Of a stretch of DNA of 64,000 nucleotides, positions 1 through 60,132 are shown piece by piece. The stretch comes from Schmidtea polychroa (Eukaryota). The position numbers and the translations under genes are program-made. Every line of letters starts with the position of its first letter. Positions within the stretch are counted from its first letter, which is position 1. The stretch is from assembly GCA_044892525.1 (NCBI GenBank), contig CM097887.1, positions 21,452,001 to 21,516,000 of the forward strand, read 5' to 3'. The notes beneath the pieces were generated by a model. The model worked only from the letters and a program-made list of their open reading frames with translations, was not told where the DNA came from and did not search any database.

Positions 1-1110
1 ATAAATATCATGTTTAAATATATGATAATCGTCGAAATTCTCCGTAAACCCAACTGATTGAATAGAGCTTTTTATGTTTTGGATAGACATAGAGCTTCAA
101 GCATTACTAATTCAAAGATTTACAAGCCCTTGGCTGGGAGCCCTGGGATTTCCACATCTTGTGTATTCTATTGCCTAGGAGTTTTCCAAATATTAATGAA
201 ACTGGAAATTCTGTCTTTAAATTCTTTAAAAATTCCAATACCTCCCGCATGTAAATAGGAGGTTAATCCTCCAGGTATTACCACAAGTTTTATATTTCTT
301 TTTCTGCAGTGCTCTTTTACACGTTCTGATATATGAGCACGGCAAGAATCCCATACAATACATTTTCCTTGACTAGCATCAAACATTAGTAACATTAAAT
401 TTATCCATGCGATTATTAAATCTTGATTTACCCATGCTTTTTCTTGTGTAACTCTATAAATATTGTTGAGTGAATTAATATTTGCAAAAGAATTTTTTCC
501 TTTGTGAATAGCAAGAGGTACAGCTTTATTTTCTTTAGCCCAAACTGACACAATTACTGTTATTCGCATGGAAGAAAACCTTGTTTATTTAATTATTACG
601 TGTCTCCGTCCTTTTAAATCAACTGTATGGGTCCTATTATCTTCGAAATTAATAGCTGTTTCATCCATTAACAATGTTTTCGACAAGTCAACATTAGGGA
701 TCGTAACTCTTAAAAACCCATATAATTAATGGCATGGGAAATTAACGTATCATCTGATAAATTCATAAAGTTGGTTGATCTTCTAAGCGACAATCCATTT
801 CATTTCATGAAACCGTCAATCCAGCGGCCTGAAGCTTTGATGTCAATATTATTTTGTCTCCTAATGTAATAGCTCGATCGGATATGAAAATTCGAGTAAG
901 GCTTTCTTCAACCTCCAGACACTCTTTTCATTGATGCAGATTGTGCTCTAATCGTTTCTTTATTCTTATACCACTGCTGAAACATAGATTGACTATACGA
1001 GCAACTATCTCTGTAGCCGAAAAAGTGAAACATGAATTTCCAAGCTCCATATATGAAATCATTTCTTTCTTAAAAGCAATTGTAAATGTTCTTTTTTTCA
1101 TTGGGGTGAT
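1..1110 (-). mobile_element. Degenerate pogo/Tigger (DDE_1) transposase
   Basis: Fragments GLSLRRST, LMDETAINFED, RITVIVS, AWVNQD, VWDSCRAH and VIPGGLTSYL, interrupted by stops and frameshifts. Confidence 0.8.
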
Positions 1111-1222: not shown

Positions 1223-1336
1223 TTAAATTAATGTGGTAACTTGATAAATATCGCCTCGCTCTTGTTTCCGTATTGGAATCATTGACCGAACTTCATCAAC
1301 AACATTCAAGTCCACAGAAAATTCTAACATTCCATC
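1223..1336 (-). CDS. NIT2: Nitrilase terminal exon 4 (missed by the ORF track)
   Basis: Branch-like gctaat, then tttag|DGMLEFSVDLNVVDEVRSMIPIRKQERGDIYQVTTLI*; resembles the NIT2 C-terminal pattern (DL..EVR..IP...Q.R.D.Y); phase 0 acceptor. Confidence 0.85.
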   Translation of the reverse strand, partial: DGMLEFSVDLNVVDEVRSMIPIRKQERGDIYQVTTLI

Positions 1337-4300: not shown

Positions 4301-7300
4301 TGTCAAGGGATTCGCGTGACTGTCTTCTGGTCTAATATTAGGCATGCCTGTGAGATTAAGAGAACATATTAGTAGAATTCTATTCGCTCGTCTACGCCCG
4401 GTTACCCCAAGACGTTTGATACACTATTACATTTAAGTTCAAGCGTGACCCGTATTGCAATGATCTTTTAGGTGAAAAATGAACTTAATTAATTTCCCCT
4501 TCTGATTTCGATGTAATTTAAGTGGGCTAGAGAATTATGAAATTCAAGGTTTGTAAGTATCAGTTACAAAATTGCAGTTCGTATGTTTAAAGTGAAAATC
4601 CATAAGCTGTTTTTGACGAACTAATGGTTGATACAGTAAAAATGAGCGTTTAAAATTTTATAAACTAAATTTTCAATAGCGGTTGTTTAAATCATTTAAA
4701 GATTTAATTTAACTGTTTATAGCAATTTATGTTAATTTAAATATTAATTTTCCTTTAATAATTTTTAGAATTCCCTGTTAATAATTTTTGCAAAAATTTA
4801 TTCTACTAGGACCAACTATGGGAAGTGGATGTCGCACATTGTCTGAATTTACATTCAGCTCTTGCGAATCCCTGACCATAGTGGTTGTAAGTAGTTCCCT
4901 CATCAACTGATACTTAACGGGTAAATTAGCTTTTTAAATTTTTGAAGTTTGTATAATTTCAGGAATAAGTCTCCAAACTCTTCACTTTGAAGGTGACAAC
5001 TTAGATCATGGATTCGAGATGCCACTGTTTGATGGAAGTTCAAAATATGCCAGCGCTCTAACTTTGTGAGGATTTAGCTGGATAATATCATTTAGTTAGA
5101 TTTTTGATCTATGCCTTGGAGTTCTAAGTCCACCAATTTCACCCGAAGACGTCCAGCGATTTATCATTTGCTTTCGAGGATTTACCCTGATGGGAGTATT
5201 CAGTTATATAATTCTCGCAAAGCGAGCATTCAAAGGGACTTGTATGCATTGATTTATTTATGCCGTTTTCTGTTTTTTGAAGAGTATTTTGGTCAATAAA
5301 TCTAGCTCGATTTTTGAATCTTTGATTTCTTTACACAATCCTACTCGGATATTCAGTTTTTTTAGAGTAGCTTCGGCATGATTTTGTTTTTGCTGGGGTA
5401 GGTAAATGAACTAGAGTGTTCCTTCGTGCGATGATCCGAGGGACAATTCCATGAGGTTATTATTAATATAGGTATACACACGTACACTCACAAATGCACA
5501 TACGTAGTTATAACTACGTCAATTTACAAATTTAAGTTACTGATCCTGACGTCATTTACTGGGGGGTGTTACTAAAAATAGATCTCAGTAATTTTCCGGG
5601 ATTTTTATTGGAGGTACATAAATTTACAAATTTAAGTTACTGATCCTGACGTCATTTACTGGGGGGTGTTACAAAAAATATATCTCAGTAATTTTCAGGG
5701 ATTTTTATTGGAGGGTAGGGTCATTGTAACTAATAGGGGGATCCCAAAAATCAATAAAATTTTGGTTAAAGTTTTATTTAAGAAAATAATCCTTCCGATA
5801 ACGTAAACATAATGGTAATAATGACCAAGGTGAAAATTAATGTCGACAATACTAACAGTAGAAATAAATGATAACAATAATAATTTNNNNNNNNNNNNNN
5901 NNNNNNNNNNNNNNNNNNNNNNNNNNNNNNNNNNNNNNNNNNNNNNNNNNNNNNNNNNNNNNNNNNNNNNNNNNNNNNNNNNNNNNNNNNNNNNNNNNNN
6001 NNNNNNNNNNNNNNNNNNNNNNNNNNNNNNNNATAACGGTAAGGTAAATCATGATAATAAGTGTAAGTTTTATGCAGTGGGTAATAAATGTATAATTCGG
6101 AAGGGGGGTATTTATGAATATTTATAACTTATTAGTTTAACATTTTACAGACCAAGTATATGCTAGAATGAGTTAATTTAAGGCATTTATATAACAGGTA
6201 ATGAAGGTATGATTCAGGGGGGGGGGTGGTTATGAATATTTATAAGTTATTAGTTTACCATTTTACAGACTAAATATATATTAAATAAGTTAATTTAAGA
6301 TATTTATACAATAGATAATGAAGGTATGATTCAGGGGGGGTTGTTTATGAATATTTATAAATTAGTAGTTCAATATTCTATAAACTAAATACATAAAAAA
6401 TAAGTGAATCTAGGGTAATTAGGTAAATACATAACCTAGGGGCTAATTACGTAGATTTATCATTTTAACATTTTGTAAGTTAAATATATATCAAAATAAA
6501 TTAGGATATTTAAGTACTGGACGATAAGTATATAATTCAGAGGATCATCTTATGAAAATTTATAAACTATCATTTTTACATTTTATAAGTTAAACATATA
6601 TATCAAAATAAGTTAGGATATTTATGCATGAAAATTTACAACCTATCATTTTAATATTTTATAAGATAAATATATACATCAGAATAAGTTAGGATATTTA
6701 TGAATGAAAATTTACAAACTATCATTTTAATATTTTATAAGATAAATATATACATCAGAATAAGTTAGGATATTTATGAATGAAAATTTACAAACTATCA
6801 TTTTAATATTTTATAAGATAAATATATACATCAGAATAAGTTAGGATATTTATGAATGAAAATTTACAAACTATCATTTTAATATTTTATAAGATAAATA
6901 TATACATCAGAATAAGTTAGGATATTTATGAATGAAAATTTACGAACTATCATTTTAATATTTTATAAGATAACTATATACATCAGAATAAGTTAGGATA
7001 TTTATGAATTGGACAATAAATATATAATTCAAAGAACCATTTATGAAACTAGGTAAGTTGTACATATTCCAGTTGGGTTATAACCATGAACTGGTGATTC
7101 GACGACTTTACGGCATTGGTCAGAAAGATTGCCTTTTCTTTAAATTCAATATGCTGATATATGCAATTTCATACTGATGGTAATGACACACTCTCTATGA
7201 AGATAACGAGAAAAGGGTGGTGAGGATAATGATAATAATCTTGGAGGTGATATTACTATTAAGGCCAAATAGAATTTTTAAAGATTTCAATACCCATAAG

Positions 7301-16300: not shown

Positions 16301-16819
16301 TCTAAAAGGCAAAAAATACTGTTGAAATGTAGTTTGCAATGTTGGTTTATGATTTATTTTATCTTGTCGATCCATTCAACCGAACTTCTGGAGCTCACTG
16401 ACGGCCATCTCATGCAAGTACATTAGTATCTACTCAATCATGAAAAATCGAACATTCAAATTTATTATTGAAAAATGATACTTATACTGTATTCTCATTT
16501 AAATATCCAAAAATTACTTTTGAACGAAATTACTAAGAATTATGTAACATATTATTTAAAAGGAAAAAAGAACGATTTCTTTGTAGATTAAATTATGTAA
16601 TTTTTAAATACATGTTATTACAAATATCTTACACCTGATGACATAAAAACTAAATAAAAAATAAAATGTACTATTAGTTCAAAGAATTCGGCTGCTACGA
16701 TGAATATGAAAAATGATTCTCGCTGGAACGGAAATGATTTGAAGTTCTCTACTGTGATATGTGTTCGCTGATTCCATGAAATAGTAAAAGATAGCATTTC
16801 ATAAACCGATCAAAAGGGA

Positions 16820-16863
<44 letters not shown>

Positions 16864-19800
16864 CGTGAATATACCCCGCATACGCGCATAACCCGCACAC
16901 GTGTATACCCTGCACAAATTACAAAATAAGTAAAAACAAAATCGTACGACCCGCACCCTTATATACCCCGCATGTGCAAAGTGAGACTTGCCGTAAACTA
17001 CCAGTACATAAGGTTGTTGCTTATCAGACGTCTGTCCCTCGAGACGCAATCGTGCTGCAGTTGTTGTTCCAACAAGCGATACATAGAGTGCAACTCGCGT
17101 GTGAAATACGATACGAGCCTACGACGTATCTGTAGTATGTTGTCTTGACAGAAAGTCGTTGACCTAGTTATCTGGTGATGGTAGGAGAAAGATTTGTTGC
17201 AGCAGCTGAGCTGGGCCCTACGATTGGCCTGATTGTGCATTGGCTGGTGCTCGGCCTTATTGTGTAGGCTATTAATTCCTGGGGTAATCAGCAGCACGGG
17301 TATTCTTGTAGTTTGAACTTCGTAGTGTATAGTGTGCAGCACGTGCAATTAAAGTGTATAAATTCTAATCAGTACTCAGTAAAGTCTTTTAAGCCTAAAA
17401 ATGCCAAAGCGTAATTCATATACAGCCGATTTTTAGCTGCAAGTTTGTGCAGTTGCTGCTACAAAGGGCAATAGAGCTGCTGGAAGACAGTATGACGTTG
17501 ATGAAAAGTCAGTTCGCGAATGGCGAAAAGACATTGAAAGTCTACAGCAAATTAATCCCCGCAAAAGAGCTCGTCGAGGGGGAAAGGTTAGATGGCCACA
17601 GTTGGAGACAAACCTCGCAGCATGGGTTCGCTCTCAGCGTGAAAACAACAGGGCAGTGTCAACTGTTGGTATCAAACTGAAGGCGAAAATAATGGCTGCT
17701 GAAATGAAGATGGATAATTTCACTGGTAGCAACAACTGGGTTTTTAAATTCATGACACGTAATCAGCTGTCGGTTCGTGCACGGACAACTGTTGGCCAGA
17801 AACTGCCAGAGAATTGGGAAGTGAAAGTTAACGACTTTCAGGAATTTGTTAGAAAGGATATCGTTGAACAGAATTTAAATCCTTCTGCTGTCTATAATAT
17901 GGATGAGGTACCCATGTCTTTTGATATTCCGGCAACTCGCACTGTAGCGGAAAGTGGTTGTAAAACGGTTGCTATTACCACAACTGGACATGAACGCACC
18001 TGCTTCACGGTTGTCCTGGCGTGCTCAGCTGCCGGTGAGAAGTTGAAACCATTGATTATATTCAAAAGAGTGACAATGCCACGTGAGAAACTGCCTCATG
18101 GAGCAATCGTACTGTGCAACAAAAAAGGATGGATGAACACGGAAGTGATGAAAGAGTGGACTGAACGATGCTTTCGTGCTAGACAGGGTGGATTCTTTCT
18201 GCCAAAGTCGTTGTTGATTTTTGATGCAATGGCTGCACACAAAGAGCCGTCTGTTCACAAACAGATCAATAAGACCGGTGCGCACATTGCTGTCATTCCG
18301 GGTGGCTTAACATGTAAGCTTCAGCCACTTGACATCGCTGTTAATCATCCATTCAAGTGTTTTGTCCGCAACGAATGGGAGAAATGGATGAGTGAAGGAG
18401 AACACACATTCACACCATCAGGAAAGCAGAGACGTGCTACGTACATTGAAGTATGCAAATGGGTTCTGGCAGCGTGACAGCAAATCAGCACTGAAACTAT
18501 TCGCAATGGTTTCAAGAAGGCTGGCCTGCTAACAGTTAGTGAAGCTAATTCAGAGCCAGCAGTAGAGGGCAGCTTCATTTCGGCCGACAATGTGAACGCT
18601 GATACTGACGATGATGATAGTGATGAAGAGTCAATTTATGACCCAACTGCTGTTGTCAACATGCTTCGCTTATTTGAAGAAGACAGTGAATATGATACGA
18701 GTTTCGATGGCTTCACTAACTATAGCGAGGACAGTGACATTAGTGAGACTGGCGATTGATTACGGCTGTATTGCATGCATTGTAGTCTATACGTTTCGAC
18801 ACTACTGGTATCGGCAAATTAGTTTAGTTGCTTACCTACTTGTTACATTTGATTACTAGTATATTAAAGATTCTCTGCCGCATCGGTACTATTTGTTTTC
18901 TTGAGGTTTATAATGAGATGTTCATAAAGCTTTCCAATGTACATTTCACAACCACACAGCGAACTATAGGAGGTATAAAGACCCACCGGTATGTCCATAG
19001 TTTCCGTTATGCTATGTTTATGAGTAAAATAAATTTTGTAAACCCCACACCTTTGTATACCCCGCACAGCTGCCATTCGTTTGGGAAAACTTGTATAACC
19101 CGCGGGTTATNNNNNNNNNNNNNNNNNNNNNNNNNNNNNNNNNNNNNNNNNNNNNNNNNNNNNNNNNNNNNNNNNNNNNNNNNNNNNNNNNNNNNNNNNN
19201 NNNNNNNNNNNNNNNNNNNNNNNNNNNNNNNNNNNNNNNNNNNNNNNNNNNNNNNNNNNNNNNNNNNNNNNNNNNNNNNNNNNNNNNNNNNNTTATTTTA
19301 ATGTGGTATAAACTGTAGGGCTAGAAACTATACCGTTCGAGTTTGTTTATTATCCAATCAGGATTGAGTATGGGTGCAAATTGGTAATTTTTTATTTTTT
19401 GCTTTTTCAAATTTTAAACAAAGAGATATGACTCATCAAGGTCATTTAAACAAATACCACGACTCATCCGAGGAAAACTATAATTTTAGGATAATTTTAG
19501 TAAAATATTTATTTATCAAGTAGAAAGGCAATAATTATTTATCTATTGACAATTTATTAGAACAAGATTTAATTTTTTTTAAATTTATTTTGGTGTTCTG
19601 TACATTGCCCACTCTGATTTTCAAAATGGTTATTTACTACGTTGCAGCTAAGATTAGCACTGATAAAATTGGACATCGGTCATACTAATTTATCAGAAAA
19701 ATTAGGTTTGCTATTTAGTTTTCCTTGGCATGAACTTAGTATAAGAATTATATGGTTACAATAATTTTGGACGAGCCAGATAATTACGTTTTCATCTCCA

Positions 19801-22800
19801 AACTGTCATCTCGTGATGTACGGATGAATGTATGATTTCAAGCGTTATCATATATTGTAAGCAAATGCGCAATATCACCAAAAGTTTGGTTACTATTAAG
19901 ATCTTATAACTTCGGAAAAGTTTATGTTCAAATATAAAAAAACAAATCTGAACTTCAAGTGGTTCGAGCGACGCTACAAAACTGTTTATCTGATATTAAT
20001 TATTAATTAATTATGAAAAGATCGCACTATTCACAGATACTTTTCCGTAAAATAAGATTTCATTGGGAATTGTAAACCGGGCTATAAGGAGAGAAAAGAA
20101 AATATTAATTTTTTCTATCCCAGGTGGCGCGATCATTTCAGTTACTGACCCGGTATTCGAAGAAAAACCATTACTTAACCGACTTTCACTCTGTCGGTTG
20201 ATGAGTTTCTCTAAATGTATTGGCATAGAGACATTTTCAATATTTATTGCCAGTGGGCTTATATTGTTCTATAAAGTGTGGTTTACGCCTGTCATCACTG
20301 ACACTATGTTTATTGCCTAAATTAACTTACCACCTTACTATTTGTTTGCACATTATATGCCTGGTTCTACTTCTGGGTTATTTTATCCGCTTCCCTCTAT
20401 TTTCTTCCGGATTACCGTGTAGTTCAGATATGTCAAACTTGCGGCCCACTTGATATATCAGTACAAAAAAAACAAAACAAAACTTAAAAAAAAAAATTTC
20501 TATGTAATCACTTCTTATAACTGTTACATTTAGTTTTTATCGTCCATTAAACAAAAAATTAAGGAAACGAACCCCAAAAATCTAGTTAGGGTGCGAAAAT
20601 AAATTCTGCTTTGTCGTACTATACCGAGGTATGTTTGTTATCCTGCTCCAAGGTTCTCAAACAATTTTGGGATTTGAAAGACGAAATATGTCAGTTTTTA
20701 ACATCAAAAAAACAAGACATCGCCTTATGGTTGATATAACGAAACACTTATCCGATTTAAATTTGAAACTGCAAGGAAAGGATCAAATCATTACAAACAT
20801 GTGTGACCAAGTTAATGCATTCAAATGTTNNNNNNNNNNNNNNNNNNNNNNNNNNNNNNNNNNNNNNNNNNNNNNNNNNNNNNNNNNNNNNNNNNNNNNN
20901 NNNNNNNNNNNNNNNNNNNNNNNNNNNNNNNNNNNNNNNNNNNNNNNNNNNNNNNNNNNNNNNNNNNNNNNNNNNNNNNNNNNNNNNNNNNNNNNNNNNN
21001 NNNNNNNNNNNNNNNNNNNNNNNNNNNNNNNNNNNNNNNNNNNNNNNNNNNNNNNNNNNNNNTAGTTTTGTTGAGTTTTTAATTAAATAAATATTAACTT
21101 CGGTGTTTCAGACTCCACATGTTCTGAAAAACAATTATTTATGTTGCGGCCCGCCGGCTCATGATACTAGTCTAATGCGGCCCGCAGGCCAGTTTGAGTT
21201 TGAAACCCCTGGTGTAGTTGCTCTCTCCTGTTACTACACTGAGGCTAGGTTTTAAATGATTCTATACTGGTATGATATTTCTACATGGATTCCGCCCTAA
21301 ATTAAACCCGGTCTTTATTACCCATTCTAAATTTAATTTATCTGTATTCCTATAATAAATTTAAGCAATATTTCTCTTTTACTTAATATTTTAATAAACT
21401 CAAATTATTGTTACGCCAACTTTAATATCCCATTAAATTTTAATAATAATTTCATGCTTTACTAAATTTACTTTATTTTAGTAATTGACTTGACTTTAGT
21501 TGAGTCTGATTGTTTTAAAATTTTATTTATTATATGAATATACGCGCGTTATTTATATAAACATATCGAAATGAATTTGTAATTAAATATTTCTTTTTCA
21601 TTTGTATAATGCCTAAACGATCAGTCACACTGTCGAAAAGTACTTGGACCAAGTTATATTTTCCTCAGTTGTGACTGCTCATACCGAGACAGGATTTTGG
21701 TCTCTGTGGATTTTAGCGAGCGGAAATTAGGATTGGCCTTAGGGTAATTCTATTTAATTAGTTTGCACTAACAGTTCCATAAGAAACATGAGGGAAATTG
21801 TTTCGTCGAACTGCAAAACCAGTCCCAAATAAATTAACGCGGTGAATTTTTATTAACTCACATTGGAGTTAATTTATCATTCATGTCGATAAGTGGCCAC
21901 ATATAGTTGAATCACAGATATTGTCATAAATTCAGATCAATTCAAATAACTATTGTTATGCATTTTGGTTACTACCATGCCTCATCCTGGTTCCGGTTAT
22001 TACTTGTTTGATGCCCTTATTGTAGTGTCGGCTATAGTAATTTGTTACGGAAGTGACTTATTCATCTCGCTCGACACAAATGTGTTTTTGATCACAAGGA
22101 CCCTAGATGGTTCATGTGCTCATATTAAAAAATTATTTTAATGTTTATTTGATGTTTTTATTATGATTTTTATTAAACTTTTTGCGTTATTTTTGCTTTC
22201 TCCAATCAGTCTCATCTTTTAATTTAATTTATTAATTAATGGCCTTCTGGCAAACACATGTTTGTATTCTTGGTTACGCTGGAAACAGCACGAAAGGTTA
22301 AAATGTGGATTACATGTAACCTACCACTAAGATAAAATCACAAGAGGAAAAATAAACTTTTAAAAAATAAATTTGGAAAGCAAAAAAATCCATTACTCAA
22401 AGATCTTAGCACTTTTAATGAAAAAAAATGAACTACAACATAGTAGAGATGTGATAGAAAGGTACGTTGACAATTCCGATTCCTTTGGTGACATATTATT
22501 TATTGTGAAAGTGCAAAAAGTTGTGTACAAATATACCGCGCGTGTAACGGGGGAATAAATTTTTGTTTTTATGATAAAATTATAGCTTCCCAGGAAAATG
22601 TTGGTAATTTTACAATTCGATTATGCAACGAGCACTGGCAGAACTATAAAGAACGCAACAAAACTTTGGGTAAGCTGGCGTACGCGGTTTGTATAACAAT
22701 AAAAGCTCGCATGTGACAGCCACTAGTTGTCTATGTCTGACTATTAGACCTAGAAAACGACGTGGCATTTGTAGCATGAAGTTTGAGCCCCGAGTGTACG

Positions 22801-25800
22801 GCTTACCACAAATGTTAAATAAAGATCATTGAGTACCAATAACGACTACAACGCGACCAATAGCGAAAAAGCCACAGATGGCTCGCGAGCCAGTGTTTGG
22901 CGACCACTGAACAAGAATGGTGATTTGTGTTCCATTCGAGCTTATTTCAAAACCATTAAGATTATAAAGAACTAAAACCCTTATTTAATTTATATTGCTT
23001 ATAATATACATTCACAAATATGAAATATGAAATAAAGTTCAATGACTGATTCGTAAATTTGGACTGTAAACTTGTCTGTCATATTTAACAATTCTTATTT
23101 GTCATTTGTTTCGATAAGTGGTCAGATATAGTCATAAATTCAGATCAAATCATTTTATTACATACGGATCAAAAATTCTTTGAATTTTAAGATCTGCTAA
23201 CGTTCTTTTCAAATATTCCACTGTGACATACATTGTACAACATACGTTTCCTTGTTAAATAAATGGACTGATTTTATATGACCAACATGTAAGAACGGTT
23301 GTTATGTACAATTCTTGTAAAAAAGCATTAAATTGTAACTAACTGTTTGAAATATATTTAGGCAAACAAATATTGTATTTATATTATATCTTTTAGTATT
23401 CTTTTCAAAAAATATCATAAATTTATTCATTTCTAGTATTTTAGAAATCTTATATTTCTTCGGATTTTTAGTGTGAAATATACATCTTAATGATCAAAAA
23501 CTTGAAATAGCCATGTTTAGCAATCATTAATAATTAATTTAACTCATGACGCTGTATTGTTATTCTACTTTAGATTTAAAAGTATAAATATCACAAAATT
23601 AAACTTAAATAGGAAATTTAAGATATAAAAATTATTTATATTTCGTTCGAAAGAAACTTTTTAAATACATTTTGTTTAATTTTATAATTTGTTAGGCGAC
23701 GCTCTAGTGTATGTCGCCCAAAATTTTAAATTATTTTAACTCAATAACTCAATAAATAAATTGATATGTATACACTTTTAACATACCCACCATGAAAGTT
23801 ACTGATATTTTTGAGTTATTCACAATTATAAATGACAATGAGCTTTTAATTCGATATCTACAAACGCATCACCTGATTTCTTCAACAAAAATTTGTCACT
23901 GTGGACGCAACATGTCCTTAATTAAAAGGGCACAAACAAGTGACGGTTTTGTATTTCAATGCCCGAGGAAATGTGGTCAGGTTTCTATTCGAAAAGGAAG
24001 TTTTTTCGAAAAAAGCAGAATGCCCCTTAAAAAACTGGTGTTATTTACGTATTTTTGGCTGCAAGACATTCCCACGAACAGGATACAGTCGATGATTGGT
24101 ATGGCTAACCAAACAATTTCTGATTGGAATAATTTCCTATGTGAGGTGTGCTCGGAATCTTTACTCGGAATGTCGGATGATGAAAGAATGATCGGGGGAG
24201 AAGGTGTGATAGTTGAAATTGATGAAACTTTGATTTCAAAGAAATGGAAATATTATCGCGGAAGAAGATATCCCGAAATATGGTTATTTGGAGGAACCGA
24301 ACGTGGCACAAAAAAAATGGTTTGGACAAATTGTTCTTGAGAGAAACCGAGAAAATCTAACTGCTTTGATTGAGAAGTTTATTAAACCGGGCAGTATTAT
24401 TTACAGCGACAGGTGGCCCGCGTATTGGACAGAAACTTATAACCTGGTACATTTAAGAAATCAAAATTATATCCACTTATCTGTTAATCATAAACTCTGG
24501 TTCAAAGATCCAGTAACCGGTGTCCATACCAATAAAATGGAAGGATGGTGGGGAAATATTAAGGTTGACACGAGGAAAAGGCAAGGAATGAGTGTTGAAC
24601 AAAAGATTAATTTTCTTGATTTTCGATTGTGGCTTTCAAGACAAAATGTTGATGAAGAAGATATTTTGATTATATTCTGGCGCTTGGTTGCTTCGAAGTA
24701 TAGTTTCGATGAATAAATTTTTAATAAACGTATTTACTTATATTTCATTTAAATATATTAATTTAATTTTAAATTAATTTAAAATTTTGGGCGACATACA
24801 CTAGAGCGTCGCCATTTGTTAAACGAATTAATTTTTATCATATAATAAAAACTATTATATTTTAAGATTCAAAAAATTCTCATTTCGGAGAAACTTAATA
24901 AATGGATTAAATTATAATCATTGAAGTGTCAAATAAAACAAACCTTATCATCCAGTGAAGATATTATTCTGCCCCAAGGATCTGTAGCTAGTGAGTGACC
25001 ATAACTTACATGATTTGCTTGATAATCCCGAGCTATGCTGCATAGGCCAACAAAACATTGATTGTCTAACGCGATTCCTCTACCAAGTAATTCCAGTATG
25101 CAGGTCCTGTAGCCATATTAAATGCTGCGGGATACAAAAGTAAATTGCATTTTTTGTTTCGAGTGTAGATTCCAGCTACTTCAGGAAATCGAAGATCGTG
25201 GCAAATACCAATACCAACAGTAACATTTCTATCTTTACATACAGGAATATTAAAGGAAAGAAATTCACTTCCTGGCACTGATGTCTCAGACTCGTTATAA
25301 ACTAAATTACAAATTCTATATATGTTGCAATATATATTGAAATTTATGAATTATTTATCTTATTACCAAAAATATGAAATCAACCATTTTATTTATCTTA
25401 TTTAGATAATTATTATAAATATATTTAAACAAAAATAGAACATGTCAAAAATTGTCGTTCATTTAAAAAATAAAATTCTTCAAATTTCTTTAAAATTTTC
25501 TTTTATCCAGAAATTTGATTTTCTAACAAATAATTAAAATGCAGAGTAATTTCATTAAGTATTTCTCAACCCAAAACTCACCATGGACAGCAAAATGGAT
25601 GCACGACAACTGGTTCACTGACAAATGGATCACCGACAAACGGATCACAATATTCAATTCACGACGTTCGGTTACGCATTTTTTTATTATCACTTAAAAA
25701 AATTGTTATTGAATTGTTTAATTAATTGAACCTGAACGCTGTACCTATTAGTCCAGAACTAATATATATATATATATATATTGGTGGGTTACAGGTAATC

Positions 25801-37800: not shown

Positions 37801-40800
37801 GATACTCAGCTTCAGGTGGACATCGACGCCCTGATAGCTGAGGGCGATATGATCTGATAAGTCAAAGCCAAATTCAACGAAACCAATTCCCTGTTCAAAG
37901 ATTTACCTTTCTAAACGTATGGTGTGACTGTATCCCGTCAATTTGTTAGATGATGAGGGTAGGCCCATCATTACATTTACCCTAGATAAATATTACAGAA
38001 TGGGGCCAAACAAATATAGAGTTAATGTGTTCGCTGAGGAACGGAAATAGGCAAAGCTCCAATGCTCAAACATACCCGCCAATCCAATTCCCAACAGTGC
38101 AATCCAATCCAATACAACCCGAAAAAACAATAATTATTCTTATCCTTTGTGATCCTATTAACAATGTATATATTTTATGTTTGACAATCATTATTTTATT
38201 GATTTTATTCATTTATTGTATATGTATATATTCTTACATTTATTGACTACATTTGGTTTATGGGTTAATTATTTTATATTGTGAATAAATTTTATCAACA
38301 AACTTAACATTATAATAAAAAGAAGGGGATTGAATAAAATTATTATATTATAAAACATTAATTATTATTATAAAAATATTAATTATTATTTAAAGTACAA
38401 TGTAGATTATACAAAAATATATTTAATTATGTTTTATCAGTAGAAAATTATACATTCCGTGCGTACAAGACGGAAATTAATATTTTAAAATTAATAGATA
38501 AAATAGATAATAACATCTGCTATAAGAATAGCAGGAAATAATAATTATAATAATTAAAAATGAATATAATATTCCGTGCGTATATGCCGGAAATTAAAAT
38601 ATTTTATTTTAACAGTATTAAAAAATAGTATATATACCACATCAAAATTCAGTAAATCTGCCCTAATTTTCTTAGGTTTTCCTGAATCTTAAAGAGGCAA
38701 TCTCTGCGAGATTTAAAAATAAGACAGCACAGAAAGTCTAACATATTTTGTTTACAATCAAAACATAACACGCACGATATACATTATAACTATACATAAC
38801 ACGCATCGTTGAATAGCGAATTATTGAGAAAGATCAAAGGATAAACTCTTGTAATTAAAAGGTTAATTTTATTTGTTAATAAATTTTGTTCAAACACTTT
38901 GTTTTTATTCAAATAATTATATAAGAACCAGCAAGTTGGGGTTTTAAAAAAGTGAGACCTCAACAAATTGATTTTTCAATAATTTTCTTACTTGTGATTC
39001 TTAAAGTATTTTGTGTTACTCAATAAAACTTATTGACGTCAAATTTATAAAGTTACGATGAATTATTTTAATGTATGTGTGAAATCCATAAGAATAATAA
39101 TGACCACGATTTGTTAAAGACGTCCCTTGGACCAGGACACCAGTCTGTGATTTGGAAACGAGGTAAGTCCTTCTATGGCACTCTTGAACCCGAACTGTGA
39201 ATTCTACCGGGAGAAGTTCTACCATGGGAGCTCACCTGCTGGTAGTTTCCGACCTGTGTATAAACTACCAACGTGTCACATCACCACGGGTATACATAAG
39301 GGGAGATGATTGCTAAGTCATGGAGATTACCCAAGCTAGTCTGTCTGAGCATGCGAATAATTTGTTTTTCTTTTTCCTCTTGGGTAACCAACAATAGCTA
39401 AGAGTAAGATTACTTATACTATAAACAATTAATAAATTTTGTTTTCCAGTACAATAAAACATGTCAAGACTACAAGATCTTAAGCAAATTGATGAATATG
39501 TTACAAGTAAAATTTTAATTATTTTAACATTGTTTAAACATTGTTTAACAAAATACTGGTTCAACTAAACGAAAGCATACCTCAAGCGAAAGTGGAGTAA
39601 TAAAAAAGGAAAATTATATCCGCCGGGAGTTTAATTAACAAGGTAGTCGCTTTGAGCTGACGAGTGATGTATCACAAGATACTTCGCAGGAAATAGTCGT
39701 ACCGGATAGCCTTATCAGAAAAATGAATGAAAATATTGAACAAATGGGAGTAGCTAAAGTTCAATTTAGACATTGTGCTGAATTAACCAAAGAAGATGGT
39801 GAACTCAAGCAATGGCGCTTGTCGAATAAAGCAGTGATAATGTACCCATCATTTATTGAAGATGGAATTGAGATTTTAAAGGAAAAGTTGGAGAAATACA
39901 CTCAACAAAGAGGTTACAATAATTGTAACTTAAATATCCAATATAATACAGGTATCTGGTAAGTTTTAAATATTATTATATATTATTAGGTTCAGGTTAC
40001 ATTAAAACTCAAAAATATCTAAACATGTGCCAAGCTTTAATTAATGTTCAATGATCAATTTTACCTTTTATATATCATATCTTAACCTCAATAGTTTTTA
40101 CCACGTTGTCTACCAGTATAAATTTCCAACTTGAACCCTGTGCTATTTCTTTTTTTATTTGTTCTATTATCTATTTTGTTCTGTATTATCTTTTTGCCAC
40201 TTATTATCTTCAGCTTTTTCCATCGTGTTGATTCTTCGGGTTTTCATTCTTTCCACTTTTCCGTCTTCGTGTGCCGATAAACATTGTGTGCATGTTCCAC
40301 ATGTACTCCATGACAACATATCTGCATTTGCATGATCAGTACCTTTTCTATACTCTATTTTAATATCCAGACTACTGAGGTAGTTAATCCATGTGTGAAA
40401 TTGCGTTGTTATTGGTTTCATTGTGGATAACATAAACGTGATAGCTTTATGGTCCGTTCTCAAAATGAACCGTTTTCCATATAAATAATGATTGAAGTGT
40501 TTACAAAAATAATAGATGGTCAGTAACTCTTTCCTTGTTATGCAATATCCCTTTTCATGATTGCTCATTGCATGAGAACCGTATGCTATAACCTTTTCGC
40601 ATCCGTTGTCGTTTTTCTGTGATAATACTGCTCCAATCGTGTCAAAACTCGCATCAGTATCCAGAATGAATTCTCTTTCGAAACCTGGAAATCCTAGAAT
40701 AGGTGAGGACACTAAAGCATTTTTCATATTTTTGAATGCGATGTTGCTTCCGTCAGTACAAATTAATTTTTTGTTGTTTAATCCGCATAGCTCTTCTAAA

Positions 40801-49800: not shown

Positions 49801-52800
49801 AGAGGGCTGTCATCGATGCAGTTGAAGCTTCCCACAATATTGCTAAAATCTTCCGGAATTCTCCGTTAGACAATGATCTATTGGAAGAGATTCAAAAATC
49901 AGTTCAGTTGGATTCAACAAGTTAAACGATTATTCCAAGTATTCCAAGTAAAAGAAATCTAGAAGTAGTACACGTTGACTACTAATTCAACTGTGTTATA
50001 CAGTCTGTGTGATTACAAATACAAGAGAAATGCTAAATACTTCCTTAAATTTAATTATCTATTTTATAAATGTCATCATTATTTTAACAAATACGTTTAA
50101 ATAACAAATAGTATTAAATAATATATAATGAACTCATCATACAATACAATATTTTGTTCCTTCTATTTACTCACTCACTTAAGTCGCTCTATCTATATTA
50201 AATTTTGTGATTCAAAAGACAGCAAAATGAATACGAGGCTTTTATAGATTTTTAACATTAATTAAAATTGTTATAATTATTAATAGATCTTGGTTATTTC
50301 GATAATAATATCATTTTTGTTAGTTTGTTTCATTTATTGGTATTTGCATAAATTGTAACCGTAATCTCTGTCTGGAAGCTAAGTGTATTATGGGTATCCT
50401 TGAAGGGACTACAAAATTCATAAAAAAAGTTAAAATCTTTCGCGTTCCGACTACTTGATTCGACTTCGACAAAGGATTTGGCAAATAGTAATTTTAAATG
50501 AAATGCAAGATAAACAACTATATGACGATTTGATATTTTTCCCAAATGCCAGGAGAAATTTATTCTATTTTTTTCTCTAAAAAAACTAAAGATTACAATT
50601 GAAATGGAAAATAAAAACACATTCCGAGATGAGCGTAGAAGTCAGAGAAGGAGATAAGAAAATCTCAGGAGAAATCAAATTAGAAATTAGAATATTGATT
50701 ATAATTTCAGTCGAGGTAAAATATTTAATTGTGAGTTTTGGTTTGAAGGATAACTATTATCCTTGTGATTGTTAATATAATTTAAGTGAACACAAAGTAC
50801 CGATAGATACTTTCGTGTTTCCTGGGAGCCCCAAAATCAGCCCACTTACTTTATCATTCTTTCAATTGCATCGCGATCGTTGTGCTACACAGGAGCCAAC
50901 GATTTCTTGCAGGCTGAGATAAACAGCAGGGATTAATAAATTCATTGTCTTGAGTTTTTCTGTACATTAGTAAAATTGTAATTTGTAAATTATTAATAAA
51001 AGTTTTAAAAAGAAAGAAATTGGTTTTGTTTGTGAATATTTAATAAATACGCGCAACCACATTGAATATCGTATATTTATATTTTATATAGGGTTGTTAA
51101 TATCGGTTTTTCGAGCAATCCGATTATCGTTTGTATAAATCCGATTTTAAACCGATTATCGTTTGCACTTTGCATAACCAAAGCTACTTACATTATTACT
51201 ATTCACGCACGTGTATAGTATAATTAGTTTTATTCAAAGTTTATACCACACACAAGGAGAATATGAACTGACTGTTTATGTAAAAAGTTAAAGCATATAA
51301 GTAAATTTGTTTTCAATTTCTTCGGTAATTTTCCCTGTATATACTAAAGTATAAATCAAAATAAAACTTTCCGGTGCTGCGGCGGCCTTATTTTAAAATT
51401 AAACATAAACATATCGAAACCATAGATATCAAAAACAAAGATTCCAAAGTGTAAACATTTAAAAGTAAGTACTAAATTCAATTTTATTTTTAAATATCAG
51501 ACAAGTCCTGGTTCATATTCAAAAAGACCAAAGATTCTGCATGATCTGGAAGAAGCCAGTTACGAAGCTTGGTTATCAGACGTCCAGTGGCCGAAAATAA
51601 TCGTTCCGATTGCACTGAGGTTGCAGGAATGCATAAGAACTTCCGGGCAAGAATAGCTGTTTTGCGGAAAAGTTTCATATTATGTTTCCACCACTCCAGG
51701 GCTGTTTCACTTGAGTTTGTCGACCATGATGATTTGACGTAATATTCAAAGTCGGATTCCTCTGGCGCCTGTTGTGCTGCACTATCACCAAGGAGAAACA
51801 TAACTGCATCATGATTTGGTCGTGATCTTTTAGTTGGTGGGATCATGTTATCTTCATCCCGACTCGTCTTCGGCTGTTCGGGGCAATCTGGCAGCTGTCT
51901 GATGAGATGACGGACATTTTCATACGCCAGCTTTTTGAAATCGTCCGGAAATCCAGGAAGATGCTTATACATCGGATCGAGAATTGATGCAACAACGCAT
52001 TCGTTTTTTGCTGTTTCATTATTTTCTAATCCAAAACGACGTGAAATATTCTTAGCAAGATCTCTCTTAAATTCACCCATAATGTCAGAATCTTCTTCTT
52101 TAATGGTTAAATGATTTTTCACGAGTCCCCATAACATGGGAAAAACACAAGAGGCTGATGGCTGGCTTTCGGCTGACATGACGGACGTCACGATCTGCAA
52201 CGCTTTTAAAACAGGGAGCAATTCAGTCATCAGTTGCCAATAATCGTCCTTCATGCCCAACGTTTTGGCATCGTTCAATTTCACCACGTTTTTGTCGCTC
52301 AATACTGCAACTACTGGCCATCTCAGTTCTACTAGTCGTTCAAACATGTCATAGACGCTGTTCCAACGAGTCTTACAGTGCTGAATAAGTTTTAGTGGCG
52401 TTTTATCCTTGTCCATGGACAACTGTCTTTTCAGGAGCTCCCCCGTTGCCATTGGGCTATGTGAGAAATGTCCGACTAGTCGTGCTGCAGCTGATATACA
52501 TTTGGAAATTTGATGATCCGTGACAACATGGGAGCCCATTGCATTATTGATGCAAAGTTGCAATTTATGCGCCGCACAGTGAACGTCAAACCATCCATTG
52601 AGATTGCCTGCATGATTGATGTTGGATGCACCATCATGGACACATGCATCAATTTTTTCTTTTATTGACCATTCATCAGCTATACTACATAGATGGTCAG
52701 CAATGACGGCTTGTGTGTGGCGTTGAGTCATCAGAATTGTTCCAAGAACAGGCGTCATCATATTCCAGTCTGTATCAATGTAGCTTGCAGTAAAACTGAG

Positions 52801-54238
52801 ATAAGCTTCATTGGTGACACTAGTCCAGATGTCGGTAGTGATCGCAATGTCCTTGACATTTTCATGGATATATTTCGACATTTTGACCACTAAATTATTT
52901 TTCATTGCTGTTAGTCGTGCTGTCATCGTCTGACGACACGGAGGACGATATCCTGGCTCCACTATCGCCATCAATTCACGGAAGGATTTCGATTCCACGA
53001 GCGAAATTGCCAACATATTTTCGGAAATCAATCTCGCAACAGCAGCCGTAATTTTTTCCTGTTTACTACTCGGACAATTTCTTTGTGTTGTAATCAATGC
53101 AGTCAATCGTGTTTGAGTATTTGAAGATGTTGTTAATCCACCATGTTTGCTACGCAAATGTGCATGCAAACCAGTCGTAGTACCTCCACTCCTACTTATT
53201 TGCTGTGCACAGAGCTTACATTGTGCCATCGTCGCCGAAATTTTATCAAAATTGTCCCAGACGTCAGACTTATTTATACGGAAACCCATAAATTTAAACT
53301 GATTCCATTCGGATTNNNNNNNNNNNNNNNNNNNNNNNNNNNNNNNNNNNNNNNNNNNNNNNNNNNNNNNNNNNNNNNNNNNNNNNNNNNNNNNNNNNNN
53401 NNNNNNNNNNNNNNNNNNNNNNNNNNNNNNNNNNNNNNNNNNNNNNNNNNNNNNNNNNNNNNNNNNNNNNNNNNNNNNNNNNNNNNNNNNNNNNNNNNNN
53501 NNNNNNNNNNNNNNNNNNNNNNNNNNNNNNNNNNNNNNNNNNNNNNNNNNNNNNNNNNNNNNNNNNNNNNNNNNNNNNNNNNNNNNNNNNNNNNNNNNNN
53601 NNNNNNNNNNNNNNNNNNNNNNNNNNNNNNNNNNNNNNNNNNNNNNNNNNNNNNNNNNNNNNNNNNNNNNNNNNNNNNNNNNNNNNNNNNNNNNNNNNNN
53701 NNNNNNNNNNNNNNNNNNNNNNNNNNNNNNNNNNNNNNNNNNNNNNNNNNNNNNNNNNATTAAAGATATTGATAGTCATAATGATAAATAAGTGCTAAAA
53801 ATTGAGAGAAACAATAGAAAATTATGATAATCTCACTTGGTCTAGTGCTATCAAATAAATGCATTTTCGAAAAGGTCCCGATTAACTGGCCATTCGGATT
53901 AAAAACCATTGACGAATTGTAAATTTTATTCGACCTAAGTTCGGGAATAGATCCACCAACTATCCAAATGGCGCATTCTCTACAATAGTTTGTAAAATAC
54001 ATTTCACATTAAAATGTTACTTTGACACTTTAGACAGCATTTGGCAAGTTTCTCCATTGGGAATATTTTCACTTTGCTGCATAAGATCTTCACTTCCAAA
54101 TGGACAGTTGAAGTATTCGGGTAAGCAGACTAATTTAACTCCTCTTTGTGAAACTAACTTAATTTTCGATTCAACATTAGATAGATTATAAGCTTTGCGA
54201 GAAGAAACGATATTTTGAATTAAAGCTACTTTAAGCAT
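1223..54238 (-). CDS. NIT2: Omega-amidase NIT2-like nitrilase, 4-exon model: 54238-54021, 53979-53837, 25301-24944, 1336-1223 (about 277 aa; 1-nt deletion in exon 3)
   Basis: Catalytic triad motifs are distributed across exons: LPEYFN (E), FSKMHLFD (K), GICHDLRF (C). Later motifs include YPAAFNMATGPAYW, ALDNQCFV, YGHSLATDPWG and VDEVRSMIPIRKQERGDIY*. All three junctions are GT-AG with matching phases (2, 1, 0). Exons sum to 834 nt once one base is restored. Confidence 0.8.
2583..2797 (-). ncRNA. Conserved multi-hairpin structured element of unknown class (copy a)
   Basis: Four stem domains; homologous to 25783-26002 with compensatory and G-U changes that pair only on the minus strand. Confidence 0.5.
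2899..3375 (-). CDS. Unknown coiled-coil ORF, diverged member of the WFxPx(Q/E)MK family (copy 1)
   Basis: FESTWFPPTEMKK matches LEGTWFSPVQMKE in other copies; heptad-rich region followed by a basic patch. Confidence 0.55.
   Translation of the reverse strand: MLSVSVLKLLEEMRADRERAQQQVEECRAKLMRLKAHCRNFESTWFPPTEMKKRMKLITQLQLQSAQDHVELHALRLRVRELEIQSYQQNLDREAISRIRPMSELLHQRKECAASKISKKKIRPGKAARARIRQACQAQVTLNATSSESAPKEPTITL
3854..4345 (-). CDS. Unknown 163-aa ORF with an Arg-rich tail and AT-hook-like RRRGRPRK
   Basis: Open GC-rich frame; a polypyrimidine-cag acceptor lies 2 nt before the ATG; C-terminal PRSPRRGPNRQRRRGRPRK. Confidence 0.5.
   Translation of the reverse strand: MPNIRPEDSHANPLTSTSRLSLNHAEADEVARLDQEEALTRLRSRWIWYKIHDWTYQNVVPVKPRIEPYINGTSLALIDAFDEVKAAVDRLHRLEEATLAGELEDCDGYARAQCHPRRTAALQRGLEYPRSPRRGPNRQRRRGRPRKGTSSTKEIRADKDGDL
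4810..5270 (+). pseudogene. Degraded spliced ORF (ORF-A) divergent from the copy 1 ORFs
   Basis: 42-nt GT-AG intron candidate at 4921-4962; CLNLHSAL and DGSSKYASA resemble YLNLHRVL (about 36370, minus) and QSSPKYASN (about 11400, minus). Confidence 0.35.
5521..5714. repeat. Direct repeat, 2 x 100 bp, each containing TGACGTCA
   Basis: aatttacaaatttaagttactgatcctgacgtcatttactgggggg begins at 5521 and 5621. Confidence 0.95.
6590..7010. repeat. Minisatellite, 76-bp unit, about 5.5 copies
   Basis: gataa(a/c)tatatacatcag recurs at 6665, 6741, 6817, 6893 and 6969. Confidence 0.95.
8992..9666 (+). mobile_element. Solo-LTR-like or MITE-like element
   Basis: TG...CA ends with imperfect inverted termini (gctgagtcgaaaatt / aattttcgactcggc), an A-rich segment, an ATTGG box, a TATA-like motif and an internal 49-bp repeat (9399-9522). 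No TSD found. Confidence 0.45.
11865..12050 (+). pseudogene. CxxC-coiled-coil family ORF, truncated (copy 2)
   Basis: PCFSCADKNAVIKDLQ...KIDELEGTWFSPVQMKE...RSEH*; a 30-nt GT-AG intron candidate (11826-11855) lies just upstream of the ATG. Confidence 0.6.
16822..16859. repeat. (TA)n microsatellite
   Basis: Uninterrupted TA run, seen directly. Confidence 0.95.
16858..19110 (+). mobile_element. POGK/pogo-like DNA transposon, near-intact transposase (about 17401-18720) with a 5' frameshift and a premature stop; right end in gap
   Basis: N-terminal DNA-binding region (GNRAAGRQYDVDEKSVREWRK), CENP-B-like HTH (GSNNWVFKFMTRNQLSVR), DDE_1 motifs NMDEVP, IFDAMAAH and QPLDIAVNHPFK; TGA at 18475-18477 where a W codon is expected; ataacccgc-type terminal motifs. 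Confidence 0.9.
20425..21211 (+). mobile_element. Internally deleted SPIN/GTF2IRD2-like hAT element with 8-bp TSD GTGTAGTT
   Basis: TSD at 20417-20424 and 21212-21219; imperfect TIRs cagatatgtcaaact / agtttgaaacccctg; transposase fragment VDITKHLSDLNLKLQGKDQ. Confidence 0.85.
22860..22909 (+). mobile_element. Buster/Charlie-type hAT right end
   Basis: aaaagccacagatggctcgcgagccagtgtttggcgaccactg matches the recalled 3' terminus of these elements; left end not found. Confidence 0.5.
23695..24813 (+). mobile_element. Complete Merlin/IS1595-type DNA transposon; transposase 23792-24716 split by one extra A
   Basis: 39-bp perfect TIRs (ggcgacgctctagtgtatgtcgcccaaaattttaaatta); 8-bp TSD ATTTGTTA at 23687-23694 and 24814-24821; motifs VEIDET, IYSDRWPAY and HTNKMEGWW. 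Confidence 0.93.
24944..25301 (-). CDS. NIT2: Nitrilase exon 3, with a 1-nt deletion at about 25093
   Basis: tttag|TT TAT AAC GAG gives (I)YNESETSVPGSEF...GICHDLRFPE...TGPAYW. After a frameshift it reads LLGRGIALDNQCFVGLCSIARDYQANHVSYGHSLATDPWGRIISSLDDK|gtttgt (phase 0 donor). Confidence 0.88.
25783..26002 (-). ncRNA. Conserved multi-hairpin structured element (copy b), abutting a (TA)n tract
   Basis: Same four stems as 2583-2797; loop and bulge differences are confined mostly to unpaired regions. Confidence 0.5.
26563..28786 (-). mobile_element. Nested solo-LTR-like elements (inner 26762-27976 within outer 26563-28786)
   Basis: TGTTG...CAACA termini; ends shared with 59224-60066 (tgttgaggatacctaaa and ccaa(a)taacccaaca); no clean TSDs. 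Confidence 0.45.
29340..31491 (+). mobile_element. Degenerate ZMYM1-like hAT transposon (DUF4371 plus dimerisation domain); left end missing
   Basis: RGLAFRG, NGNYLG, YFSIIIDSIPDISHLDQL, RGQSYDNASNMSG and ERSFSTLKRIKNHLRS; 3' terminus ...atacggccatg. Confidence 0.88.
31126..31339. mobile_element. Tc1/pogo-type MITE nested in the hAT 3' end
   Basis: TIRs cagtaataccccg / cggggtattactg flanked by TA on both sides. Confidence 0.85.
31698..32475 (+). pseudogene. CxxC-coiled-coil family ORF (copy 3), full length but frameshifted
   Basis: PCFSCADKNA...LEGTWFTPAQMKE...LRLEHC; S/T-rich linker; RPKRKRLIRAEK; C-terminal DDQLVADLELLLQERGD. Confidence 0.65.
34706..35410 (+). mobile_element. Solo-LTR-like element
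   Basis: Starts tgttgggct like 8992; A-rich segment; ATTGG and tatataa boxes; imperfect inverted termini. Confidence 0.4.
37095..37857 (+). pseudogene. CxxC-coiled-coil family ORF (copy 4), one frameshift near 37410
   Basis: TCFLCADKNA...YECRWFSPPQMKE...LRLEHC; KKRKRPSRAKK; C-terminal DTQLQVDIDALIAEGD. Confidence 0.65.
40167..41003 (-). mobile_element. Ty3/Gypsy pol fragment (RT C-terminus plus RNase H)
   Basis: VKFLGHII, SFLGICNYYRRFIKEY, ILDTDAS..IGAVLSQ, YCITRKELL, RTDHKAI and YRKGTDHANAD. Confidence 0.92.
41004..41830 (-). pseudogene. Degraded transposon-associated ORF
   Basis: FWEKSRILTR and EFLRLQG.ARVGSMTSVDRQLAAKEKR resemble a recalled uncharacterised DNA-transposon protein family (Cc8K15.2-like); many stops. 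Confidence 0.4.
43210..43405. repeat. Imperfect tandem repeat of about 50-55 bp
   Basis: cacRYG...(g)tcagttag(t/c)a.cagtgtg recurs about 4 times. Confidence 0.7.
44060..44662 (-). pseudogene. Intronless RNF115/RNF126-like RING E3 ligase copy, disrupted
   Basis: N-terminal YYYHKCNRHV...CVTCIDGLIERI; FDNFVTRIMNQFEQSGPP; frameshift near 44270; then SICLSDYELADEVYELPCQHRYPVQCLKTWL with several RING ligands lost. Confidence 0.75.
44880..45545 (+). mobile_element. Buster/ZBED5-like hAT transposase C-terminal remnant
   Basis: HYFP, EEEEQLI, LEEFW.SVKKSYP, KILLRFSSSWLC.GFSALTEIKSKKR; cagtgtt at 44881. Confidence 0.8.
48050..48699. mobile_element. MULE-like MITE with 9-bp TSD
   Basis: Termini gggtctggttcaatttcccgaca / tgtcgggaaagtgatcgccaccc with subterminal cccga repeats; flanks atgttaaat / atattaaat. 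Confidence 0.8.
49686..49960 (+). pseudogene. ZBED4-like hAT transposase fragment
   Basis: LEKWDI...STIVKA...LGCYTHAIQRAV...IFRNSP. Confidence 0.55.
51089..53315 (-). mobile_element. Ac/ZBED1-type hAT transposon with an intact 599-aa transposase ORF (53289-51490); 5' end in gap
   Basis: BED finger (VWDNF...CKLC...TTGLHAHLRSKH), ITTDIWTS, HCAAHKLQL, CKTRWNSVY and IPATSVQSERLFS; taggg terminus at 51089. Confidence 0.93.
53837..53979 (-). CDS. NIT2: Nitrilase exon 2
   Basis: (K)ECAIWIVGGSIPELRSNKIYNSSMVFNPNGQLIGTFSKMHLFDSTRP; ends CCA A|gtgaga (phase 1 donor). Confidence 0.9.
54021..54238 (-). CDS. NIT2: Nitrilase exon 1
   Basis: MLKVALIQ...VKLVCLPEYFNCPFG...GETCQMLSKVS; ends TCA AA|gtaaca, followed by a 41-nt intron (54020-53980) ending tgtag. 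Confidence 0.9.
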
Positions 54239-57200: not shown

Positions 57201-57899
57201 AACATAACGACTCAATATTTGGATTCATAATAATGTTACAAAAATGAAATAATCAACTCATAATGATGTAATTGTTCTTGATAATTTGAGGTTGATAAAT
57301 AAACCCAAGAGGTAGTTTAAGACGACAGGTTATTGACTTCGAGATGAAGGAACACACATCAACTAAGCGTTTTTTTACAAAAACATTTAACTATAATTTT
57401 ATCTAACCATTAAAATAGTCTTATTATTTATTTACATTTATCACTGCAACACATAGATAGTATAAATATTATCGTGCCATTAATATTTTAATAAATTTAA
57501 TTACAGTAGACAAAATGAACAAATTTAGCGAGGATGTAGGTTGATATACGTAGGAAGCGGCGTGGCATGCATTTCGAGCAGAATCGATGGTACGGGAGTG
57601 CGTCGAATGGAAGCGATATGATTGCTTTGTAGAGAAGCATAACGAAAGTATCGAATAGACAAACTTGCGATAGTGAAAAGTTACCGCACAGGTAATCCAC
57701 CACTTATTTCAAGCGACAATAGCAATTCCTAACAATGCTCATGAATTATTATCTTTCCATTTGGTCAAAGACCAAAATTAATTTCTAATAAAAAAATTAA
57801 TCCTCCAGACTGCAAAATACCTTACAATTCTTTTTATCTCTACGATCATTATCCCTACGATTTCAAACAATTGTTAATTTTTATAGTTCTAAATAATTT

Positions 57900-59104: not shown

Positions 59105-59223
59105 CTATACCGAATATTGATAACACTTAATTTCCAATTTATTTAACATTAATAAATATCAATGTGAATTTTAGAAAGAAATTATAATTAGTCCATATGA
59201 AATCAAGGGTTTTTAAATTATTA

Positions 59224-60066: not shown

Positions 60067-60132
60067 GTAGGTAGTTAGTAGCCACAGCAGCACGACCATT
60101 CTGTAGGGGGGGGGGGGGGTCTGCTGCCGTAT

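Follow-up and report, generated by a model that had tools for sequence, protein, structure and literature searches.

Introduction

In Drosophila, a short-intron mode is combined with very long introns. Fly introns of more than 40 kb are often removed by recursive splicing (PMC6110457). Schmidtea mediterranea has sharply bimodal introns, of about 57 bp in one class and 1-10 kb in the other (PMC4978528), and in Gyrodactylus salaris intron modes of about 32 and about 58 bp are found together with introns of up to about 20 kb, the short mode being concentrated at the first two intron positions (PMC4040987). For Schistosoma mansoni, introns of up to 33.8 kb are given with reference to the genome paper (PMC7924807). 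That a tiny intron at the 5' end precedes giant ones towards the 3' end is already well known from animals.

Within the NIT2 family of carbon-nitrogen hydrolases, the gene of the monogenean Cichlidogyrus casuarinus (KAL3314859.1, L003:6001-6910) offers a compact term of comparison, as the whole gene occupies 910 nt. Its first intron, of 31 nt, matches intron 1 of the locus described here in both codon and phase, and its second intron, of 48 nt, lies within 1-2 codons of intron 2 of the locus. The encoded protein also has a shortened loop after HLFD. The two genes differ in that the Cichlidogyrus gene has no third intron, and in that its second intron is about 600-fold shorter.

The locus described here lies in a window (the whole stretch of DNA that was analysed) of 64 kb, with 32% GC and five N gaps. 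Like the genes of animals with bimodal introns, it would combine a micro-intron with introns of tens of kb and carry the small intron at the 5' end, but its ratio of intron to coding sequence is extreme (52 kb vs 0.83 kb). The four exons are read here, at slightly better than an even chance and on the evidence of the DNA itself, as one locus with real giant introns. The probabilities attached in words to this and the other readings overlap and are not meant to sum to one.

Structure and family assignment

The initial annotation had described a NIT2-type gene made up of four exons on the minus strand. Their order, strand, coordinates and GT-AG borders hold on re-reading of the letters and agree with the tiling by Pfam and tblastn matches, and the sizes of the three introns are exactly those claimed (Table 1). 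GT and AG stand at the borders of all three introns, so that all six splice-site dinucleotides are present, and none of the five N gaps falls inside an exon. The further claim, that the four exons form one gene whose second and third introns measure tens of kb, is a structural reading that fits all the sequence evidence. As for the size of about 30-42 nt that had been given for other intron candidates in the window, no second host gene was found there with which to compare it.

Table 1. Features of the NIT2-type locus, of its paralogue and of the mobile elements within its introns (window coordinates)
Feature	Position	Strand	Description
Exon 1	54238-54021	minus	218 nt; ATG at 54238-54236; phase 2 at 3' end; residues 1-72
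Intron 1	54020-53980	minus	41 nt; GTAAC..TGTAG
Exon 2	53979-53837	minus	143 nt; phase 1 at 3' end; catalytic Lys111 (SKMHLFD)
Putative intron 2	53836-25302	minus	28,535 nt; GTGAG..TTTAG; 25302-53315 gap-free
Exon 3	25301-24944	minus	358 nt; Glu124 and catalytic Cys154 (GICHD); 1-nt frameshift
Frameshift site	25091-25095	minus	TGG (Trp190, 25095-25093), then only AA (25092-25091) before TTA (25090)
Putative intron 3	24943-1337	minus	23,607 nt; GTTTG..TTTAG; only 21063-24943 contiguous with exon 3
Exon 4	1336-1223	minus	114 nt (111 nt plus TAA); C-terminal 37 residues
Paralogue terminal exon	59104-58988	minus	38 codons and a TAG stop; AG acceptor placed at the same codon as in exon 4
hAT transposase ORF, intact	51490-53289	minus	599 aa; intron 2; BED zinc finger and hAT dimerisation domain (Pfam)
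hAT transposase remnant, degenerate	29820-31078	plus	intron 2
Gypsy-type LTR-retroelement RT-RNase H fragment	40167-40727	minus	intron 2; PF17917, E=3e-29
Pogo/Tc5-type transposase fragment (HTH_Tnp_Tc5 and DDE_1)	17602-18477	plus	intron 3; adjoins gap 19111-19292
Merlin/IS1595-like DNA transposon	23695-24813	plus	1,119 bp; intron 3, 130 nt downstream of exon 3 donor; PF12762

The similarity of the exons to a NIT2-type carbon-nitrogen hydrolase is far beyond chance. In Pfam searches, the pieces match the CN_hydrolase profile (PF00795) in order, at profile positions 1-69 (exon 1, E=9e-8), 74-116 (exon 2, E=6e-8), 134-172 and 189-236, and three of the four pieces exceed the gathering score individually. 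Exon 1 alone finds mouse Nit2 (PDB 2w1v, E=5.7e-10), and exon 4 is recovered by tblastn with NIT2 homologues (E=2e-4). The conceptual protein, with an X placed at the frame break in exon 3, aligns end to end with animal NIT2 proteins. Exon 1 carries the catalytic Glu41 (LPEYF), and this residue, K111, E124 (YNESE) and C154 align with the corresponding family columns; the Glu-Lys-Cys triad and the second Glu are therefore kept. The best named relatives are all animal proteins annotated as omega-amidase NIT2, with 44-47% identity, a label that they carry by homology only.

Compared with NIT2/omega-amidase as represented by PF00795 and 2w1v, the locus is collinear over the full length, would give a product of about 277 aa and has the Glu-Lys-Glu-Cys residues. 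It departs from the family in that the frame is broken as assembled, in a loop shorter by 3 residues where exons 2 and 3 meet, and in a small insertion, VCKDRNV, before the catalytic Cys, which is common only to one relative (P0214, described below). When the window was searched by tblastn with the exon peptides and 30 homologues, the four exons and a paralogue of exon 4 were found and nothing further; copies of exons 1-3 elsewhere in the window were not among the matches.

Close relatives and their gene structures

The searches returned no transcript or protein from the organism of the window, and the nearest records are two. Exon 1, searched against 1.8 billion representatives, gave one close relative, P0001, a UniParc-only entry of 127 aa that is 86% identical to the focal copy and contains the equivalents of exons 1-2 only. 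It joins these two exons exactly as proposed here, then continues past the donor of exon 2 and ends within the intron. Such a truncation is the signature of a gene model without a nearby exon 3, as would be expected if exon 3 were far away in that genome too, and it was counted in favour of one gene. The second record, P0214, comes from another organism and was found by a profile search seeded with the exon pieces. It is a protein of 285 aa encoded on a 982-nt intronless, mRNA-like contig (L004) from a JGI environmental sample, and it is 60% identical to the conceptual window protein over the full length.

In the P0214 transcript, the counterparts of all four exons follow one another directly and the 3/4 junction shows no indel, which also speaks for a single gene. 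Its residues 1-72, 74-120, 125-190, 195-243 and 244-278 are tiled by the window pieces at 56, 62, 65, 65 and 57% identity, and this evenness, together with the ordered tiling of PF00795, was weighed on the same side. Against a single gene stands a length difference located precisely where exons 2 and 3 meet: there the window protein lacks 3 aa relative to P0214. Intron 1 is crossed continuously by both P0001 and the P0214 mRNA, and a metagenome contig (L002), 51% identical, has a 46-nt GT-AG intron that agrees with intron 1 in position and phase; the intron positions shared with this contig and with Cichlidogyrus were counted in favour of one gene as well. Of the 80 loci returned by a metagenome scan with P0214, none exceeded 46% identity to the window protein.

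A maximum-likelihood tree makes P0214 the sister of the window protein (100/98) and puts the pair outside the neodermatan flatworm clade, but does not resolve its place among animal NIT2 proteins. The branch of the window protein is long (0.62 vs 0.22 for P0214). At columns that are at least 93% conserved among 111 relatives, the window protein departs at 15 of 71, the maximum elsewhere being 7 and the count for P0214 being 3, and this was weighed against the reading as one gene. Most of the departures in exons 1-2 are common to P0001, a sign of a divergent subfamily and not of simple decay.

The reading frame and the state of the copy

The initial annotation had presented the locus as a gene of 277 aa with exon junctions in matching phases (AA/A, A/TT and AAG/GAT). 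The GT-AG junctions stand, but the three phases are not all compatible with an exon 3 of 358 nt, and as assembled no full-length ORF is left. The coding sum of the exons (218+143+358+114 = 833 nt) is no multiple of three. Within exon 3, one frame runs to ...GPAYW and a second one starts from the TTA at 25090 (TTA-CTT-GGT, LLGRGIALDNQ...); relatives have W-E-L at this site, written TGG GAA CTT in the P0214 transcript. The assembled ORF stops at TAG 25068-25066 after 198 aa, which counts against the reading as one gene. Apart from the missing base, exon 3 is open and conserved in both of its parts, of 67 and 49 codons, and the splice phases 2, 1 and 0 are compatible once the one-base deficit of exon 3 is allowed for.

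A small intron inside exon 3 was also considered as a means of restoring the frame. Every GT..AG removal within the exon that gives a complete frame was enumerated, and the only small ones, of 29 and 38 nt, lose the YPGAFN or the RAxDNQ core; the idea was rejected. At this site, either one base has truly been deleted or base calling went wrong in a short G run; in the former case the copy would be a very young pseudogene, in the latter an intact gene. If the four exons are granted to be one locus, these two states are about equally likely.

One alternative is that the locus is dead: an unprocessed pseudogene that is no longer spliced to a functional mRNA, its 'giant introns' being decaying spacer between relic exons. 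The premature stop caused by the frameshift, the excess of substitutions at family-conserved sites (R197I and P210I among them), the branch longer than that of the sister P0214 and the redundancy with at least one paralogue all favour it. Nevertheless, there is just one disabling lesion, and the missing base sits at the short G run, where a base-calling error is possible. By an estimate made for this analysis, stops would make up about 8% of random codons at 32% GC, yet the exons are otherwise open, including the 119 codons of exon 3. The catalytic residues and the splice-site dinucleotides are all intact, the deviations in exons 1-2 are common to P0001 and hence maintained, and the terminal exon has a dN/dS of about 0.2 against its paralogue. 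A dead gene is considered unlikely, though it deserves to be kept in view. The stronger statement on the opposite side is itself doubtful, namely that the copy is intact and expressed, the frameshift being a base-calling error and two TE-filled introns of 24-28 kb being accurately removed from a coding sequence of 0.83 kb by an organism with default introns of about 40 nt.

Composition of the long introns

The two long introns had been called TE-packed. This description holds as far as the presence of hAT, pogo, Merlin and gypsy remnants is concerned (Table 1), but recognisable, Pfam-supported TE coding sequence amounts to only about 5.6 kb of the 52 kb of intron. Pfam searches with 30 further ORFs (at least 65 aa) added just a pogo fragment and the Merlin match, ORFs in the program-made list that cross N runs are artefacts, and the self-comparison of the window shows few dispersed repeats. 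The remaining intron sequence, AT-rich and with several tandem arrays, was assigned to no class. By tblastn, NIT2-like sequence was not found within intron 2, and Rfam and tRNA scans of the window gave no matches.

Two of the elements are genuine insertions, a point counted in favour of one gene. The Merlin-like element has 45-nt TIRs (98%) and a perfect 8-bp TSD (ATTTGTTA), its transposase being frameshifted. The intact hAT ORF, whose nearest relatives are 76% and 61% identical and lie on metagenome and Logan contigs, possibly belongs to a recently active element; it starts 27 nt from the gap that follows exon 2, and the 5' end of the element is lost in this gap. A second pogo/Tc5-type DDE fragment (168-569, minus strand) lies just downstream of the focal gene.

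Other repeats were observed in the window. A dispersed, rather GC-rich repeat of about 225 nt (81% identity) occurs at 2581-2801 and 25781-26006, with an inverted piece at 22262-22304; the first two stand 0.5-1.3 kb upstream of exon 4 and of exon 3, and the short inverted piece is on the far side of exon 3. This arrangement, in which the repeat flanks exon 3 in inverted orientation, raised the idea that the exon had been captured by a transposon. The idea was set aside: the inverted arm measures only 43 nt, there is no second exon 3, and the third copy, near exon 4, differs in spacing. Tandem arrays (100 nt x2, 115 nt x2.8 and 76 nt x6) occupy 5515-7083, beside the gap at 5887-6032, and each 115-nt unit contains a run of 7-10 G. 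At 61341-61893, a unit of 281 nt is present as a tandem duplicate (94% identity) with near-identical short ORFs of 51 and 47 aa, for which no family match was found.

Contiguity and the isolation of exon 3

The exons fall into three groups, each on its own contig: exons 1-2 (53759-64000), exon 3 (21063-53315) and exon 4 (1-1525). The gap that divides exons 1-2 from exon 3 (53316-53758) starts 78 nt past the exon 2 donor; its 443 nt are unread and its size is an estimate only, which counts against one gene. Exons 3 and 4 are separated by four gaps (20830-21062, 19111-19292, 5887-6032 and 1526-1703), the last of them ending 190 nt ahead of the exon 4 acceptor. The linkage of the exon groups thus consists of scaffold joins beside repeats, in a family with tandem paralogues, and this too was counted against a single gene.

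The position of exon 3 within its contig is independent of the scaffolding. In this gap-free stretch of 32 kb, no NIT2-like sequence besides exon 3 was found, over at least 28,014 nt on its upstream side and at least 3,881 nt on its downstream side. Should exon 3 have any splicing partner, a giant intron is real, and the isolation of the exon was counted in favour of the reading as one gene. The possibility of an exon 3 hidden beside exon 2 was followed in the letters that were read: the 78 nt before the gap hold a 42-nt GT..AG candidate, after which a stop follows, and the candidate was rejected for this sequence.

A second terminal exon

An intact-looking paralogue of exon 4 lies 4.75 kb upstream of the ATG of focal exon 1, on the same strand, which shows that the NIT2 family is tandem here. 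The two terminal exons share 66% aa and 69% nt identity, with dN 0.27 and dS 1.27, and their differences are mostly at third codon positions. The pair is an old duplication, both copies of which have been constrained for most of the elapsed time; the resulting dN/dS was counted in favour of one gene. An exon 3 equivalent was not found from 59105 to 64000, within the gap-free contig that also holds focal exons 1-2. The rest of the paralogue gene must lie beyond 64000 or be missing.

The paralogue bears on the long introns in two ways. It shares the position of intron 3, and at least 4.9 kb ahead of its last exon are without any exon 3, both of which were counted in favour of one gene. The argument cuts both ways: a long intron at position 3 is a family trait independent of scaffolding, yet a scaffolder could confuse paralogues. 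In an unrelated animal, the EukProt entries P0213 and P0217, with adjacent gene numbers (16766, 16767), are tandem NIT2 genes as well; their sequences group with the jellyfish Rhopilema, and one of the models is a fused 1.5-copy artefact. These entries suggest that tandem duplication of NIT2 and its mis-annotation are recurrent.

It could be argued that exons 1-2, exon 3 and exon 4 come from two or three members of the NIT2 family and that scaffold joins flanked by repeats make them mimic one gene or, in a variant, that the true exons 3-4 of the focal copy lie in unread sequence. Each exon group does occupy a separate contig, a repeated hAT element borders the gap behind exon 2, and the paralogous terminal exon in the window proves a tandem family. 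Moreover, exon 4 and its paralogue are 66% identical, whereas exons 1-2 and P0001 are 86% identical, which implies at least two old lineages. On the other hand, order, strand and phases are all consistent with a single gene, the identity to P0214 is even over the exons, and the window holds no spare exons 1-3. The 78 nt that follow exon 2 before the gap resemble exon 3 or its flank no more than shuffled controls do, and exons 3 and 4 (at least 472 nt of exon alone) together with their introns would exceed the gap, if its estimated size is right. Exon 3 would in any case still need an intron of at least 28 kb to any upstream partner. A mixture of paralogues is considered rather improbable.

Proposed removal of the long introns

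The homology, order and borders of the exons are established, as are the TE content, the frameshift, the existence of the paralogue and the isolated position of exon 3 in a single contig. The splicing of the three exon groups to one another, and its manner, are inferred. The preferred reading, one locus with real giant introns, would run as follows. The locus would be one copy of a tandemly duplicated NIT2-type (omega-amidase-like) gene in an AT-rich, animal-like genome. Intron 1 would have stayed in the micro-intron class, at 41 nt, while introns 2 and 3 would have been inflated to about 28.5 and about 23.6 kb by insertions of hAT, pogo, Merlin and LTR retroelements. If the gene is expressed, the long introns would be removed by ordinary cis-splicing. 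Exon definition would pair the splice sites on either side of each short exon, and recognition of the 41-nt intron would take place across the intron.

The initial annotation had gone further, taking the long introns beside a tiny one to suggest exon definition, recursive splicing or trans-splicing. Nothing in the sequence supports this, and a special mechanism is not needed: known genomes with intron modes of about 32-57 nt also contain introns of 10-34 kb. Recursive splicing at internal ratchet sites, or trans-splicing between separately transcribed pre-mRNAs, is extremely improbable as the way in which the exon groups are joined. Only the intron lengths speak for it (recursion being common in fly introns of more than 40 kb, PMC6110457, a class below which the window introns stay), while introns of 20-34 kb leave by ordinary cis-splicing in many animals and neither a promoter-like nor a leader-like feature was seen ahead of exon 3 or exon 4. 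Over the whole window, the recursive splice-site consensus of the fly type, YYYNYAGGTRAGT (polypyrimidine-AG/GTRAGT), had 0 matches on either strand, a weak test, as 0.17 would be expected by chance.

Implications

For annotation, the locus illustrates how gene finders tuned to micro-introns cut such genes short, as in the 127-aa model of P0001. Because of the frameshift and the tandem paralogue, it should not be annotated as an intact gene of 277 aa without transcript support. The copy is either an ordinary TE-bloated gene or a young pseudogene. For biology, it opens no new splicing question and adds another case of transposon-driven intron inflation beside conserved micro-introns. If the copy were intact and expressed, it would be a compact natural test case of how a micro-intron spliceosome deals, by exon definition, with long introns rich in cryptic sites.
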